Shown here: positions 1 through 10,918 of the stretch, one piece after another
How positions within the stretch are numbered: position 1 is the stretch's first letter
How the letters are laid out: the number at the start of each line of letters is the position of its first letter
Origin: Wallemia ichthyophaga EXF-994
Lineage: Eukaryota > Fungi > Basidiomycota
Direction of reading: 5' to 3'
Assembly (NCBI RefSeq): GCF_000400465.1
Contig: NW_008806282.1
Location: 90,001 to 122,000, forward strand
Length of the DNA: 32,000 nt
Notes under the pieces: model-generated
What the model was told of the DNA's origin: nothing
Database searches by the model: none
What the model saw: only the letters and a program-made list of their open reading frames with translations
Made by a program: the position numbers and the translations under genes

Positions 1-48
1 GTTGGATAGACAGATACAACGACCAAGATACTTTGAATAAAATAAAAA

Positions 49-1191
49 ATGGGCGGCGGTGATCTAAATATGAAAAAGAGCTGGCATCCTATGCTGATGA
101 AGAACCAGAGAGTGGTTTGGGATAAAGAGCAGGATGTTCTCCACGAGAAGAAGAAACTTGAGCAGTTGAGAAGGGAGAAGGAGGAGGAGAGGCAACTGCA
201 GCAACTGCAGCAATTACAACACGCTTCTACGGGCTCAGCACCTTCCGACAGAATGGAATGGATGTACGCTGCTCCTGCCACCGCTAACTCTTTAAACTCA
301 TCCGAAATGGAAGATTATCTCCTTGGCAAGAAGAGGGTTGATCATATTCTAAAGGGTGACGATGAGAAAGGGCTAGCGGGTCAGCAGCAACAGCAACCTC
401 AACAGCATCCCAACAATCCCCGTGACACCTCCTCTAAGATCAAACTAGACCCAATGCTCGCAATTAAACAACAAGAACAAGCTGCTTACGACGCTCTCCT
501 TAAAAACCCATTTAAACTTGGTCAGCTGAGGGAATCCGCAGGTCATTCATCCTCTTCCTCTAGAGCTGAAAAAGATGAACGCAAACAAGCTAGACATGAA
601 AAGAGGTTGTTCAAGGAGAGTTTAAGAGAGGGTAAAACACGTAATGATAGATTGGGTGATAGGTATGGTGATATAAGGGGTGATAGACGGAGTGGTAGAT
701 ACAGCGATAGATACAACGATAAATATAGCGATAAATATAGCGACAGATACAGTGACAGATACAGCGACAGATACAGCGACAAATACAGTGACAGATACAG
801 CGACAAATACAGTGATAGATACAACGATAGATACAACGACAGATACAACGATAGATATCGTGATAGTCATCGCTACTCCCCACCACCACGCAAGCATCAC
901 TCCCCATCACAGCATCCCCCAAATCCCTCCTCACAGTCTCGCGCTGATAAGTTGGCCGCTATGTCAGCTTCTGCCCAATCACTCCAATCCGAACGCGACA
1001 TTCGCCTCGCAGACATGCAACGCAAGGATGATGCCGAGAAGAAGCGTGACGATATTGCTAGATCCAGAGATGTGAAATATGGCAACCACAATCAATTCAT
1101 TGCAAACGAGCAACGTAAAGTTTATTCTGGAGATGGCGGTCTAGCTGAGCAAATGAGACGGAGGGGTGGTAACGGTGGTGGTGTAGTGTAA
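49..1191 (+). CDS. CWC25: Pre-mRNA splicing factor Cwc25 (380 aa, no intron needed)
   Basis: N-terminus MGGGDLNMKKSWHP and the later RMEWMY and DPMLAIK motifs match the Cwc25/CCDC49 family as I recall it. Low-complexity R/D/S/Y-rich C-terminal half. Confidence 0.92.
   Translation: MGGGDLNMKKSWHPMLMKNQRVVWDKEQDVLHEKKKLEQLRREKEEERQLQQLQQLQHASTGSAPSDRMEWMYAAPATANSLNSSEMEDYLLGKKRVDHILKGDDEKGLAGQQQQQPQQHPNNPRDTSSKIKLDPMLAIKQQEQAAYDALLKNPFKLGQLRESAGHSSSSSRAEKDERKQARHEKRLFKESLREGKTRNDRLGDRYGDIRGDRRSGRYSDRYNDKYSDKYSDRYSDRYSDRYSDKYSDRYSDKYSDRYNDRYNDRYNDRYRDSHRYSPPPRKHHSPSQHPPNPSSQSRADKLAAMSASAQSLQSERDIRLADMQRKDDAEKKRDDIARSRDVKYGNHNQFIANEQRKVYSGDGGLAEQMRRRGGNGGGVV
697..864 (+). repeat. Coding minisatellite: 14 x 12-bp units encoding [RK]Y[SNR]D inside CWC25
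   Basis: Units such as AGATACAGCGAC / AAATACAGTGAC counted directly. Protein reads RYSD RYND KYSD KYSD RYSD ... RYND RYRD. Confidence 0.97.
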
Positions 1192-1266
1192 TATAACAAT
1201 TAACATAAATATATTCATGTACTTGTAAATGTACATCTAATTCTATCTCCATTTAAACAACCCACT

Positions 1267-2811
1267 CTAAACACTAATCGTTTTGCAAATATTAAACCCA
1301 TCCGAGGCCGTAGACACAAAACAGCCGGGCACCTGCGCATGCCAGTGAACCTCTTTGATATCCTTCTGGCCTTGATGACAGAACATGAGTTGAGGAGGAA
1401 CGAGCTGCTCGACCTCGCTAGCCAACTCCTCCTGATCGAGCTCAACAGCGAGATCCCACAGGGTGACCTGATCGTCTGCACCTGAAGCAGCGAGGACCGA
1501 AGGCTCCTTATGATGCCACTCGATGCCCGTAATAGGACCTTTATGCCAATCGAACTGAGCAGCAGGCTGAGGGGCAGTGCTAGTACCTGGTTTGAAATTG
1601 CGCAAATCCCACACCTTTACCATTCCTTCATCACCCCCAGATGCCAGCAGATACTCCGTGTTTTTGTTCCAATTAATTACGTTCACATCCTCGCTATGTG
1701 CGTCGAGGACGCTGACGACAGCTGTGCGCGTGCGCACACGCGTATCCCATACGCGCACACTCCTGTCAGCAGAGCACGATGCGAATACGGTGCGTTCACT
1801 AGGCGACCACTGCAGGTCCTCAACGGAAGAGGTGTGCGAGGTGAATGGGGCGGGTGACGGGATATATCCGCTATCAGTGAAAGTAGAGTTGTGAATAACG
1901 CCCGCGCAGTCACCCGTCAGGAGCTGTCTCTCGCTCGCACCCTCGCGCGACCAGTCAAGCGCAAAACCCTCTTCGCTATGCGAGTTTATAGTGTAAAGAG
2001 GTTTATTATCGCGCGTCTTATCTACCATATACCCTGGATTAGCTAGTGCGAGTTGATGAGGACGGATGTTGAAGATGTGCACTTTGCCTGTATCTGCCCA
2101 GGTAGCAGCGAGATAAGGACGGTTGGGCATGCTAGTTGGATCAGTTGGTACGAAATTGTCTTCCACGCCCGCCACTCGGAATCGATTGATTCCACCGCGG
2201 TGCGCAATTGACTTGTACTCAAGTGTAGGCGTCTCATCTGCCGTCTCATCATCTTCTTCTTCGTCGCTGTCATCGTTCTGCTGCGTCTTCCATAAATTCC
2301 CCCAGCGCATTACGAGCACCTCATTCGCATCACCAGCCGCTTGCGTTCCCGTTGCTGCGTACATCTCTTGCGGATACGTACGGCGCTCCTCACCGCCCCC
2401 ATCGCGCAACAAGTCGAACGACAGACAAGGCCATGGAACAGACATCGTGTGCAGCATCTCGTAAACTGAGTTATCAGGCTCGAGTATTTCGTCTGGTTTG
2501 AGTTTATATTGGTGCGGTATGTAAGGCTGCGCGGATGGTGCTTGGGTGTCTCCTTCTTGGCCATTGTCGCCATTATCCACGCCGCCTATCTGCTCCATAT
2601 CGTCCATCTGCTCCACCCCATCCTCATCCTCATTCTCCCCGTCGTGTACCTCCCCGTCGCTCTCAAACTCATCCTCGTAGTTGTCCTCAAATTCTCCCAT
2701 CCCGTCTTCTCCTCCCCGGGAACCGTCGTGGCGCTCTTGTCCAGCGCGGCTCTTGGCTTGTGGCTGCTCTGCGCTGGCTGCTAATGGCGACGAGCGTCTC
2801 TTTGCTGGCAT
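1267..2811 (-). CDS. RRB1: Ribosome assembly WD40 protein Rrb1/GRWD1
   Basis: Acidic N-terminus, DNSVYEMLH...WPCLSFD (CAF1C/H4-binding-type) motif, WD repeats (SVEDLQWSPSE, DVNVISW-like, QLMFCHQGQKDIKEVHWH). Start taken at MPAKRR (ATG at 2811) rather than the ORF-track start at 2901. Confidence 0.9.
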   Translation of the reverse strand: MPAKRRSSPLAASAEQPQAKSRAGQERHDGSRGGEDGMGEFEDNYEDEFESDGEVHDGENEDEDGVEQMDDMEQIGGVDNGDNGQEGDTQAPSAQPYIPHQYKLKPDEILEPDNSVYEMLHTMSVPWPCLSFDLLRDGGGEERRTYPQEMYAATGTQAAGDANEVLVMRWGNLWKTQQNDDSDEEEDDETADETPTLEYKSIAHRGGINRFRVAGVEDNFVPTDPTSMPNRPYLAATWADTGKVHIFNIRPHQLALANPGYMVDKTRDNKPLYTINSHSEEGFALDWSREGASERQLLTGDCAGVIHNSTFTDSGYIPSPAPFTSHTSSVEDLQWSPSERTVFASCSADRSVRVWDTRVRTRTAVVSVLDAHSEDVNVINWNKNTEYLLASGGDEGMVKVWDLRNFKPGTSTAPQPAAQFDWHKGPITGIEWHHKEPSVLAASGADDQVTLWDLAVELDQEELASEVEQLVPPQLMFCHQGQKDIKEVHWHAQVPGCFVSTASDGFNICKTISV

Positions 2812-5900: not shown

Positions 5901-6487
5901 GTTCTTTAGTTTGAGAATGATTTGTGCCTGGCTGTGGAAATTGTTGAGTGATCAGCCTCCGCGAAGAAGACACACCAACCTCTGACCAGATTTAATAAAC
6001 GACTTCAAGCTGCTGCCTCTGTTCGTAGCTGTAGCTCTCCCACCCAGCGCCAGAGTTATCGCTGTGAGAATTGCTGATTTCCCAGAACCGTTATGACCGA
6101 TGATGAAGTTGAGCTGAGGGCCCAAGTCAACTGGTGCTGTCAGCTGGATGCTCTGGATAGCCACCTGCACGAAACTCACAGGATAAATACTTGTGGCACA
6201 TGAAATTGTACACCTCCACGTACTGGATAATTCCAGCAGCTGCGACTCTTCCCTTGCTTTTCTTCTGCGTCTGGTCCTGCCTCTGTTCCTGCGCCACTAT
6301 CTGCATCTGCGCCGCATCAATCTCCTCATCTTCTTCGAGCTGGTCGTCGTCTTCTGAATTACCACCCTTGTGCTGCTTGTGTGGCGGCTGGAGATTATTT
6401 TAGCGCGTAAAACACCAGTAAATCCCCACCCACGCCATCTGTATCCTCCTCCAACAACAATCCATTATCCCGTTTTCCGCGTTTCAT
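2962..6487 (-). CDS. SMC6: Structural maintenance of chromosomes protein 6, about 1095 aa, 6 exons
   Basis: NFMCH, Walker A GHNGSGKS, long coiled coils, LSGGEKSFSTICLLLSLW...CLDEFDVFMD C-terminal head. Hand-built introns 6388-6433, 6131-6179, 5932-5979, 3188-3233 and 3094-3142 (all GT-AG, 46-49 nt) give a continuous frame of 3288 nt. Confidence 0.93.
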
Positions 6488-6507
6488 TAGTGATGATAAC
6501 CGAGAAG

Positions 6508-6587
6508 ACGCGTGTGTCATCATCGAGGGTGGTGTTATACTTTTATCGTACACATTCTCATCTCAAGTTTCCTTTTGGTAAACGCGT
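6508..6587. promoter_or_regulatory. Two MCB-type ACGCGT boxes upstream of SMC6
   Basis: ACGCGT at 6508-6513 and 6582-6587, within 100 nt upstream of the SMC6 ATG. MCB boxes are established G1/S elements of fungal DNA replication and repair genes. The hexamer also occurs by chance elsewhere in the window. Confidence 0.45.
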
Positions 6588-7087
6588 TCTTTTACATGCA
6601 TCATTTCGGTCCTCGAAAACACACAGCAGCTAGTTCCTGTTCGCTCTGGGCCGTCGATAGCACACTTGATTGATAAATTCTCCTTTACTGCTATGTATTT
6701 TGTAGCTTTGAGCCGACTTAGTACAAATACAGCCTTCCTTTCACCTAAATCAGACTTTCCTGAACAATGAAAATTTCTGTTGCTGCCATTTGCAACACGA
6801 GCAATGGGTTAAGAACAAAGTAAAGACTTTCATGACATATTCATAGCATATTTTAACCGGTTCAAACAATCTGAAAAGGGTACGCATTGATATTTGTCTC
6901 CTGAATATATATGAACGTTTGCATTTGCAATATCAACAGCAGTGATATGAGAATGAAGAACAATTCGTTGGAAATTGACCTTCAATTACAATCGCCTACT
7001 GCCTTTGGTTGATTAGGGGCTCCCGCGCAAGTCAAATAGATTGACAGCCGGAGCTTCAAATCCATTCACTCTAAATCAATTACTCTC

Positions 7088-7129
7088 GATGTCATCGAAC
7101 TCTTCCATGTCGTCGACGTCAATACCCTT
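7088..7129 (-). repeat. Exact 42-bp second copy of the eEF3 3'-terminal coding sequence (7561-7602)
   Basis: GATGTCATCGAACTCTTCCATGTCGTCGACGTCAATACCCTT occurs identically at 7088-7129 and 7561-7602. On the minus strand it encodes [14 protein letters not shown]. Confidence 0.95.
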
Positions 7130-7557
7130 TTCCTCAGCTAAGAAAACCAAGCGTGTCAAACGTAACAGAATTGTCATCGACTTTAACTAGAATCGTCGCT
7201 TGATGCAAAGACTTCAAGAGTCAAGTTGTCTCATTTTATATTGCTACAAAATATTTGCTAACTATATTTTCTTGCTCAATCTTTTTGGAACAGTCTTTTC
7301 GCTCAAGCAAACGTCTTGAAAATCTTCTTTGTCAAACTTCTTTCTTGATAAATCTTCATTATCCTTGGACAATCACATACTCAAACTCATCGTGAGCATG
7401 TGTTTGCCTTGTGTGTTAATCAGTGTTAACAATATTCAGCATCAACAGCTAGTCATATCAACATCCTGCTTGTATTAAGCACTATGCCTGTCAGCTTCAA
7501 CGAGTAGACTAAACGAGTGAAATAAAAGATTCATAAAATAGAAGAATAGCTACACGA

Positions 7558-10500
7558 CTAGATGTCATCGAACTCTTCCATGTCGTCGACGTCAATACCC
7601 TTCTTCTTGAGCGCCATACGTTCCTTCTTCTTCTTTCTGAGCTCAGAGGCGTTCAATCTGGCCTGTTTCTTTTCGCTGACGATCTTGTTACCAAGGGCAT
7701 CAAACTTGTCTTCTTCATCGTCCTTCTTCTCAATCTTGGTCTTACCTTGACCTTCGACCTATAATGACGTCAGTGAGATATTTTCCAGAAAAGTGTGATA
7801 TTTCTACTTGCCCAATTATGACCTGATGCTTCCAAGTAACCGTCTCTCATTGCCCTGTGTAACGCTGTCAGTATTATTCACACTAGTAACAAGTGTCACC
7901 CACCAAACTTCGGAACAGATCGATTCGGAGAATTCTCTGTTGTGAGTGATGATCAAAACACCACCACCGAAGACCTTGAGGGCTTCAATGAGTGCTGCGA
8001 GTGACTCTCTGTCGAGATAGTTTGTTGGCTCATCCAAACAGATTACGTGTGGCTTTCTCCAGGTGGCAGCACCGAGAACAACCTTGACCTTTTGTCCACC
8101 AGAGAGACCTGCTTGGGTGTAAGAAATAGACTCTAAGATACTATATCACCATACCTCTCATGGTGTTGTGGGTGGTGAACTCTGACTCGAGACCAAAGTC
8201 CTCAAAGTGCTTCTCGATCTCCTTACGCACAAGTGGTCTCATCATACCGAGTCTCTGGGCCTCACGGGTGTCAACCTCCATGACCTTCTTCTCGAAACCT
8301 CTCTTGACGAGCTCGTCGCGAGAGAACCACATGTTGTCAGCAGAGGACATGCCCTTGAAGCCACACTCGTACTCGTAAGATTGCTTGAGCTTCTTACGGC
8401 CGACAATCTCCTCAATGTAGCGCTTCTGGCCTTCGATGATGACGACAGAGCCGTTCTTCATCTTCTCAGCCTCCTCCTCGGTGATTTGGCGCGTCTCCTT
8501 CATCATCTCCTCGAGATCCTCACCTGTCTGGTATCTCCAGAGCATGTACTCGAGTGGGGTCTTGTCGAGGTGGTTGTCGATGTGGTGGAAGGCGTGCTGG
8601 GCGACATATCCGATAACCAGGTTAGGGTGCTTCCATACCTCACCGCTAATGTTTGGCTCAATGTCACCGATGAGCAGCTTGACGAGCGTCGATTTACCCG
8701 CTCCGTTTGGTCCGAGGACGGCAACACGTGACGAGAGGGATACTTGCAGCGTTATGTCAAACAGCTGTTGCACCTTGGCGGTAGGGTACTGGAAGTTCAC
8801 CTTACGCATCTTGAGCAGCGACTTCTCCTTGGTCTTGACACCCTCCAACATTGGTGGCTCTGGGAGAATGAACTTGTACTCCTCGCTAGCGGCAATCTCG
8901 AAGAAGGACTTGGCCTCTGGGACGAGTTTAGCAAAGTTCTCGAGGTTACCTGGGTAACGCTTGATCTTGAACTTGCTCAAGTAGATGACGTCGGTGATGG
9001 TCTTGTTGAGGAACTCCGAGTCGTGGGACACAATGATGGAGGTACAGTGGGTGAGGGAGGTAAGGTAGTCAATGATCCATTGCACGTTCAACACATCCAA
9101 GTGGTTGGTTGGCTCATCGAGCAACAAGATGTCGGCCTTGAAGAGGATGGCTCTGGCCAAGGCAAGCTTCATCTTCCATCCACCAGAGAGAGAGCCGATG
9201 GACTCGTCTTGGCGCTCCTCACTGAAACCGACAGTGGCCAAACCTTGTCTGATCTCAGCTTCGTCAGCCTCAATACGCTTGTCAGCTTGGACGAATTGGA
9301 CAACAGTGGTGTCTTCCTCGCTACCGTCAATGTCGTGCTCGACGTAGAAGGTACGGACTTCGTCTGGTGATGGGAAACCTTCAACTTGACCATTTACAAT
9401 GGCTCTCATGAGAGTGGATTTACCGGTACCGTTACGACCAAGGAGACCGTATCTGTGACCTCTCTTAAGACGAAGGGTGGCGGTGTTGAGAAGAATCTTA
9501 GCACCGTAAGCCAATGAGAAGGTACAGTTACAGAGATCTTCACCCTCCTCTTCGTCAGGGAAGACGTGCTCAACCTCGGCATCGTCAGCGGAGGTCTTTT
9601 CGAGCAACTCCTTGACGACGGCCTTTGCTTGTGAGTTGACAGAGGCTGGGTCGACAGCGTTGAGTTGGAGAGAGATGAGCTGGACGAGAGCAGAAGTCCA
9701 CTCAGTTTCCTCACCGCAGCGAGCATTTGAAAGCTCTTGGCCGAGACGGGCAATGTATGCGACGAAGCAGTCGTCAGCCTTGGCGAGAGAGTCACCAGTG
9801 TTCTTGAGAGCGGCAACTAAGACATCAACAACGTGGTTGAGTTCGATGGTTTTGATTGGTGGGAGATCGGTACCATCCGAGTTTTCTGGTACGCTACCAA
9901 CTTGACGGAGCTTCTTGATAGCGCGGTTGACGACAGAACGTGCTTCTGGGTCAGCGACAGATTCCTCAATCTTGATAAGACCTGGAAGAAGCTTTGGAAG
10001 GAAAGGACGAACGATACGCTCGTTGTCGACGAGGGTGGACATGTTGTCGATAATGACAGCAGTCTTACGACGGAGAGCAGTTTGACGTTCAGCGAGACCA
10101 CGAGAGAGAAGAGGTTCCATGAGGGCAAGGGTTGGTGAGTCGACCTCAGAAACGAAAGTGGTAGCGGCCAAAACTTGGATAGTTGTTGGGACCTTTTCGA
10201 CTGGGTTGATGAGACATTCTTGGAGTGCAGGAATGAATTTTTCAATATCCTTGTTGTTGACCTGGAGTGGAATATTGGTTAGTACATCAAGATAGCCACT
10301 TCAAAACACCCTCACAAGAGAACAAAGCTTCTTCAAAGAAGAACGTGCAGCCTTCTTGACATCTGATTTGGTGTCCCACATAACTTCAGCAAGAACAGGC
10401 ATACAATCCGGCATGAGACGAGCCATTTGGTCAGGGACAGATACAACGAGCTTGTTGAGAACAGCCAAACCACCAGTCTTAATTTGCCATTTACCTGCGG

Positions 10501-10918
10501 TTCTGATTTGCTCGAGGAGTGGTGGCAAAATGAAGGCAGTGGCCCAGTTGTTCATGACTGCGACGAAATCTTCAACGGCCTTGACAGCAGCATCTCTAAC
10601 AGCATTGCTCTTATCAGCGAAAGCTTCCAAGAGAGCGCCAAAGACGTCGTGTTGGGTTGAAAGAAGGAGGTATGGCTCAACAGGAGTGAATTGGCCACCT
10701 GCGACGATAGCAGAGATCAATTCGGCTGCGCCCTGTCTAGCGGTTTCGTTCTTCTTTTCAGATAAACCGCCGAGGATAGATTCAGGGAGAGAGAGAGTGG
10801 CGACTGCAGCAGGGCCACCGTCCTTGATAACTTTTACAACAGCTTCTTGAGCTGCGTTACGCGCGGCTTTATCAGCGTTGAATATGGCTGAAGTGTCTAA
10901 CTGTCCCGGCGTAGGCAT
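7558..10918 (-). CDS. YEF3: Translation elongation factor 3 (HEAT repeats + two ABC domains with chromodomain insert), about 1052 aa, 5 exons
   Basis: [12 protein letters not shown] and GPNGAGKST Walker A motifs, [20 protein letters not shown]-rich tail. Start MPTPGQ at 10918. Introns 10262-10315, 8109-8154, 7855-7903 and 7759-7811 (GC-AG) give 3159 nt in frame. Confidence 0.96.

Follow-up and report, generated by a model that had tools for sequence, protein, structure and literature searches.

Why are the last codons of the gene for translation elongation factor 3 (eEF3) found a second time just beyond the gene, and could this second occurrence act as an alternative last exon? The question arises from a 32,000-nt stretch of the genome of the fungus Wallemia ichthyophaga EXF-994 (contig NW_008806282.1, positions 90,001 to 122,000), which as a whole we call the window and number from 1. 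An earlier sequence-only reading of it pointed out that the last 14 eEF3 codons recur exactly downstream of the gene, and offered two explanations: a regulated isoform with a swapped tail, or a recent repair product or retro-copied fragment. Comparison with other strains and species makes it quite probable that the downstream element is an ectopic duplicate of ∼45 nt, comprising those 14 codons and the stop, which lies in the W. ichthyophaga eEF3-SMC6 intergenic region, is lineage specific, drifts neutrally, and is not a conserved coding exon.

Both a repeat search and alignment confirmed the recurrence: 7088-7129 equals 7561-7602 on the minus strand, an exact core of 42 nt, with the second copy lying 470 nt downstream in the same orientation. 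The repeat search extended the core to a 50-nt direct repeat of 94% identity (7085-7134 versus 7558-7607), and local alignment stretched the similarity to ∼55 nt (7085-7138 versus 7558-7612) with one indel. The flanks of the two copies show no homology, scoring 11 and 13 against shuffle nulls of 10.6 ± 1.4 and 11.0 ± 1.4. A chance origin of the repeat is excluded, because no other repeat of ≥28 nt exists anywhere in the 32-kb window. The parts of the locus are as follows (UTR, untranslated region).

7558..10918, minus strand: the eEF3 gene, with five exons encoding 1,052 amino acids and a TAG stop at 7560-7558
7558..7602, minus strand: the parental repeat unit, i.e., the last 14 eEF3 codons plus the TAG stop
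7130..7557, minus strand: the spacer between the copies (428 nt, AT rich), eEF3 3′ UTR followed by intergenic DNA
7085..7129, minus strand: the ectopic downstream copy, 42 nt of it exact in the reference (7088-7129) and 45 nt, including TAG, in most strains
6488..7084, minus strand: the remaining intergenic DNA, reaching the SMC6 start

Which copy is the gene end could be decided from the DNA that follows each one. The segment 7556-7506, 3′ of the annotated stop, aligns to the eEF3 3′ UTR of a Wallemia relative represented by a Logan contig (L023; z = 3.9); the sequence 3′ of the downstream copy matches no relative's 3′ UTR. Because only the upstream copy leads into an orthologous 3′ UTR, it is the true gene end and the downstream copy is ectopic. 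In every W. ichthyophaga strain locus, annotation places the end of the eEF3 coding sequence at 7558.

The downstream copy is real and occurs in many strains. The reference was assembled with SOAPdenovo at K = 21, smaller than the repeat, so an assembly artefact had to be considered; the strain data refute it, and we give it next to no probability. The sequence-only reading had suggested looking for the copy in raw reads and sister strains, and there it was: eight independently assembled W. ichthyophaga strain loci (L024 to L031) carry the same structure, with single-nucleotide polymorphisms (SNPs) of their own. L031 is the EXF-994 reference record (GCA_000400465.1, KE007232.1), 100% identical to the window over 9,487 nt. 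Logan contigs (k = 31), which derive from other, unrelated read sets, agree. On the eEF3 side, contig L019 breaks off at 7573, having included exactly 30 nt of the parental repeat; on the SMC6 side, 7114 is the first position of L032 and L033, which leaves them exactly the last 30 nt of the 45-nt copy (...GATGACATCTAG/AGTAATTGA), a breakpoint that had been predicted beforehand. Contig ends 30 nt into each copy therefore reflect a branch in the de Bruijn graph where a repeat exceeds k.

The proposal of an alternative last exon rests on the following features, in which a slash marks the presumed exon-intron boundary.

7740..7748, minus strand: the donor-like AAG/GTAAGA, which falls in last-exon codons for Gln-Gly-Lys-Thr
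7138..7162, minus strand: the acceptor-like motif CGTTTGACACGCTTGGTTTTCTTAG/, with a TTGAC branch-like site and AG/C
7079..7137, minus strand: the proposed exon, with SNPs at 7135 (E/K) and 7087 (stop/E)

The donor-like AAG/GTAAGA and the acceptor-like TTGAC...TTTTCTTAG/ were found as the sequence-only reading had described them, and joining 7746 to 7137 is indeed in frame and yields the protein that it gave. The implied intron, 608 nt as it had calculated, is ∼10 times the norm; introns of this gene measure 46 to 54 nt, and the mean intron length in W. ichthyophaga is 61 to 68 nt (PMC3849046, PMC6738226). The acceptor-like site (TTGAC, AG/C) also differs from those of this gene's introns, which have CTAAC, CTTAC, or CTGAC (CTRAC) and AG/G. 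Relaxed acceptor-like sites are common: the 1,070-nt intergenic region contains nine, compared with a shuffle expectation of 7.8 ± 3.2, or ∼1 per 120 nt by chance. The eEF3 coding sequence contains GTAAG at five places, and the donor motif, GGTCAAGGTAAGACC, is kept as coding sequence in W. hederae, in the L023 species, and in a further Wallemia species known from metagenomes (P0254), all of which lack the copy. We infer that common motifs coincide here by chance, in the in-frame acceptor-like site as well as in the exonic GGTAAG.

Searches for the products gave the following. Three protein forms (the normal one; VEGQ-AEEK...ESN; and KKK-AEEK...ESN, made via an internal G/GTATTG donor), each with the N-terminus of our gene model, had no match in an exact look-up against a collection of 15 billion proteins. 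In Joint Genome Institute (JGI) metagenome and metatranscriptome contigs, neither the alternative junction nor the tail itself was found; since the eEF3 tail is also missing there, that collection is uninformative on the junction. Alternative splicing has been reported for 15% of W. ichthyophaga genes (PMC3849046), mostly as retained introns and alternative 5′ or 3′ sites, and exon skipping is described for one case (PMC3849046, PMC6738226); the supplements of PMC3849046 have no entry for the eEF3 gene.

Other Wallemia lineages place the copy in time. No copy of the eEF3 tail lies 3′ of eEF3 in the sister species W. hederae (3,621-nt intergenic region), the L023 species (682 nt), W. mellicola (775 nt), or the P0254 species (∼1,200 nt); tail-copy scores in these four lineages all fall within shuffle nulls, compared with 45 in the window. 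The outgroup intergenic DNA cannot be aligned with that of the window. In the intergenic region of W. hederae, a stretch of 36 nt matches the copy at 75%; we attribute this to chance, because the stretch lies inside a long open reading frame (ORF) on the other strand. The acidic end of the protein varies within the genus: MEEFDDI in W. ichthyophaga, MEDDI in W. hederae and the L023 species, GIDVDDLEDDI in W. mellicola, and GVDVEELDDL in the P0254 species. Compared with W. hederae, the L023 species, and W. mellicola, W. ichthyophaga has a specific Glu-Phe insertion in this end (window 7561-7581). The downstream copy carries these EF codons; it thus arose within the W. ichthyophaga lineage and is young.

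Within the species, we compared nine sequences, the window and L024 to L031. At minus-strand position 7087, six of the nine have T and three (the window, its own record L031, and L026) have G. With T, the copy ends in ...ATC TAG, the parental stop, and its identity to the parent grows to 45 nt; with G, the codon is GAG. Because most strains keep the parental TAG in the copy, the "ESN*" ending is a derived SNP of the reference haplotype; the sequence-only reading, which took the copy to end in ESN, was thus right for that haplotype and wrong for the majority of strains. At the second SNP, 7135, it is the nonreference allele that matches the parent, and the proposed second codon is Glu or Lys accordingly. 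Variant sites are distributed as follows.

Putative exon (7079..7137): 2 variant sites in 59 nt
Rest of the intergenic region: 14 variant sites in 1,011 nt
eEF3 coding sequence: 1 variant site in 1,782 nt

By Fisher's exact test, variant density in the exon differs from that in the coding sequence (P = 0.003) and not from that in the intergenic region (P = 0.22). Purifying selection on the proposed exon was not seen in these nine sequences, where its variant density is that of intergenic DNA; to judge from these alleles, the copy drifts neutrally, like noncoding DNA.

A further strain, E3P91 (L036 1-640; GCA_004918235.1, SPOE01000039.1), differs more. Across SMC6 and the proximal intergenic DNA it is 97.3% identical to the window; this 2.7% divergence of its eEF3-SMC6 locus is ∼7 to 20 times the species' reported genome-wide SNP density of 0.13 to 0.40% (PMC6738226). 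Its homology with the window ends at ∼7108, and the 3′ half of the copy is represented only by ATCGAGGAGTATGACGTTATCTACAG, which is identical at 18 of 26 positions; the 54 nt next to this half-copy have one mismatch (flank ∼98% identical). Directly upstream of the half-copy is an in-frame TAA, with no acceptor in register, and the 552 nt upstream of it, which run to the contig end, match none of the sequences compared. E3P91 may have an ancestral, chance-homeologous site, at which the main lineage would have gained a 45-nt patch by templated repair, possibly along with a deletion; alternatively, the perfect copy may be ancestral, and E3P91 may have been rearranged inside it with clustered mutations. 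Under either reading, the exon is not conserved within the species. The contig of another strain, E3P78, is almost as long as that of E3P91, and E3P78 may share the E3P91 variant.

How, then, should the copy be read? If it were a true alternative last exon of recent birth, a donor at 7746/7745 would be spliced to an acceptor at 7138/7137, and the resulting isoform would lack a 49-amino-acid basic segment and keep the acidic end. The in-frame join, the strong consensus of the donor, the plausible acceptor-like site, and the perfect identity of 42 to 45 nt to the parent all suit such an exon, as does the published frequency of splicing variants in this species. The comparative evidence nevertheless runs the other way: four other lineages lack the copy; its stop/ESN end and its second codon are polymorphic; its SNP density is neutral; its E3P91 version is preceded by an in-frame stop and has no acceptor in register; its donor is conserved coding sequence where the copy does not exist; and its intron would be 608 nt among introns of 46 to 54 nt. 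The poly-Lys/Arg tract that would be lost is conserved across fungi and lies in the eEF1A-binding region (PMC6723617), and no annotation or database protein has this end. As far as these comparisons can tell, the alternative exon fails every comparative test applied, and we consider it very unlikely. That the locus would encode a regulated isoform, minor and perhaps dependent on stress or salinity, without the poly-Lys/Arg eEF1A-binding tract and with a usable terminal exon gained very recently, seems more improbable still. Of the explanations offered by the sequence-only reading, comparative and population evidence thus favors the recent repair fragment and counts against the tail-swap isoform, and the lack of 3′ UTR or poly(A) counts against the retro-copy.

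The copy has the marks of a short ectopic duplication: 42 to 45 nt copied exactly from nearby sequence, flanks at shuffle level, restriction to one lineage, and presence in independent data. It arose inside the W. ichthyophaga lineage after the Glu-Phe insertion and has drifted neutrally since. Its source was probably an event at the DNA level near the gene: replication, or the repair of a double-strand break, may have involved a template switch or a templated fill-in, perhaps started by short homeology. A retro-copy fits less well than a DNA-level repair or duplication event, since the copy is free of 3′ UTR and poly(A), lies 470 nt away, and has the same orientation; we likewise regard target-site duplication by a transposon and a decayed large duplication as less likely than such an event. 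The idea that the entire last exon was once duplicated in tandem was rejected for want of degenerate homology beyond the core. A related idea, that an older duplicated segment has had its core kept identical by recurrent or recent gene conversion, with E3P91 as the old, diverged state, draws on the 69%-identical 3′ half that E3P91 has at the syntenic site beside a nearly identical flank, and on the fact that eight of the nine E3P91 differences lie within the tract that in the other strains is identical to the parent. We nonetheless find it unlikely: neither flank of the copy retains residual similarity, and a half-copy that is 31% diverged is hard to square with neutral decay when the locus as a whole has diverged by 2.7%. 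Moreover, the half-copy already has the two lineage-specific extra codons and so is not very old. Gene conversion in any case overlaps with templated repair and implies no function. Direct repeats that bracket a 428-nt AT-rich segment could also be a long target-site duplication around a mobile element of ∼430 nt, e.g., a retroelement without long terminal repeats. This model is disfavored because the upstream copy is the true gene end with its orthologous 3′ UTR, which would be expected after the second repeat and is found after the first; the spacer lacks poly(A), terminal repeats, and an ORF, nothing else in the window matches it, and a target-site duplication of 45 nt would be exceptional. 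We hold it to be highly improbable. Several observations do weigh against an ectopic duplicate without function. The join keeps the reading frame, and 8 nt separate the copy from an acceptor-like site upstream of it, a combination whose chance we roughly estimate at a few percent. The 3′ edge of identity is the stop codon, which one would also predict if nothing but coding sequence counted. No clean junction microhomology can be defined, since both sides have purine-rich AAG/GAA runs. Finally, the structure of E3P91 fits a preinsertion site or a later rearrangement.

The lesson of the locus is mostly one of care: when the end of a gene is copied exactly and in frame, and the splice motifs look plausible, the copy can mimic an alternative exon, and here it takes population and sister-species data to show a neutral relic. 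As a duplicate, the copy provides a small, well-dated case of 45 nt in a very compact, repeat-poor fungal genome, in which ancestral and derived alleles can be polarized against the parent copy. Were transcripts to use it, the copy would represent an exceptionally clean exon birth by microduplication in an obligate halophile, and would entail loss of a conserved basic tract from an essential fungal translation factor.

Apart from the 3′ UTR alignment, the spacer (7130..7557) has no ORF of >51 amino acids, no similarity to the eEF3 gene, and no tblastx conservation. A gene or RNA in it was considered and rejected: the only Rfam match, a weak one, resembles the H/ACA snoRNA SNORA32 (7204-7295, plus strand) and, at 27.9 bits (E = 0.078), stays below the gathering score of 60. 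The SNORA32 match is absent in W. mellicola and L023 and is probably due to chance. A 53-nt, 72% match to a W. mellicola intergenic region overlaps the same interval. In W. hederae, the eEF3-SMC6 intergenic region (L022 2557-6177) extends for 3.6 kb and includes unannotated opposite-strand ORFs of 306, 292, and 146 amino acids, all without Pfam matches; the region may represent the insertion of an element or a gene that annotation overlooked. The Wallemia lineage with the tail GVDVEELDDL and an intronless eEF3 3′ end is represented by about 30 ENA and Logan contigs (L010 to L018), and the relative of W. ichthyophaga and W. hederae denoted L023 comes from SRR25399871.

The host gene is eEF3, with HEAT, a pair of ABC ATPase domains that carry a chromodomain insert, and a C-terminal extension that is basic. 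We rebuilt its model as exons 10918-10316, 10261-8155, 8108-7904, 7854-7812, and 7758-7558 on the minus strand, separated by introns of 54, 46, 49, and 53 nt. W. mellicola eEF3 (P0121), which shares 94% identity with exon 2, has the domains HEAT_EF3_N, HEAT_EF3_GNC1, and two copies of ABC_tran; PF00385 (chromo) is found in homologues. The tail encoded in the window aligns with 120 fungal eEF3 tails, and the poly-Lys/Arg tract is kept in all of the 100-plus that we inspected. In yeast eEF3, this tract is within the eEF1A-binding region (PMC6723617), and the C-terminal 68 residues of eEF3 are disordered on the ribosome (PMC7957392). The downstream neighbor is SMC6, 100% identical to a W. ichthyophaga protein and with an annotated start at 6487; look-ups of the 882-amino-acid SMC ORF and of a 59-amino-acid ORF gave no match. 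The gene order L22-neugrin-eEF3-SMC6 is common to Wallemia.

Three features of eEF3 gene structure and annotation emerged along the way. The last intron (7759-7811, minus strand) has a GC donor, TGG/GCAAGT...TATAG/G, as does that of W. hederae (GCGCGT); the L023 species has GTTAGT and W. mellicola has GTCAGT. Predictors that disallow GC-AG introns would mis-model the 3′ end of eEF3. The 49-nt intron at 7855-7903, between ...SEVW and AMRDG..., is present in W. ichthyophaga and not in W. mellicola (L001, about 7990-8010), and the P0254 species has zero introns in the 3′ 1.7 kb of eEF3 (L010 5001-6695); these differences indicate intron gain or loss within the genus. Many deposited models at the locus (L024 to L028, L030, and L031, gene 1..1930/1934; P0243 to P0247) are 1,261 to 1,356 amino acids long and have both Ribosomal_L22 (PF00237) and eEF3 domains. 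The upstream L22 gene and eEF3 seem to have been wrongly merged in these models, across the opposite-strand neugrin gene.

Set beside fungal eEF3 C-terminal extensions in general, the W. ichthyophaga tail is ordinary in having a basic poly-Lys/Arg tract followed by an acidic end; the acidic end of Wallemia is distinctive (GIDVDD...), and the extra EF residues are found in W. ichthyophaga alone. The downstream copy shares with the alternative last exons of animals and plants, which give tail-swap isoforms, a downstream in-frame exon-like segment, an acceptor-like site, and a stop of its own. It differs from them in that it shows neither conservation nor purifying selection, would need an intron 10 times the local norm, and is known here from genome sequence; moreover, W. 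ichthyophaga splicing variants are mostly intron retention and alternative 5′ or 3′ sites (PMC3849046). Like gene-fragment pseudogenes (pseudo-exons), it is a nonfunctional partial copy of a coding sequence with stop loss or gain and nonsynonymous SNPs, but at 45 nt it is far shorter than is typical, adjoins its parent, and lacks 3′ UTR or poly(A). It also resembles the footprints of synthesis-dependent strand annealing or microhomology-mediated break-induced replication, i.e., templated insertions and local ectopic duplications: a patch of tens of nucleotides, in the same orientation as a template a few hundred base pairs away, with flanks that lack homology, restricted to one lineage and then left to drift neutrally. 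Compared with such footprints, the mechanism here is a deduction, the microhomology is ambiguous, and comparison with E3P91 suggests that a larger indel may have accompanied the event.

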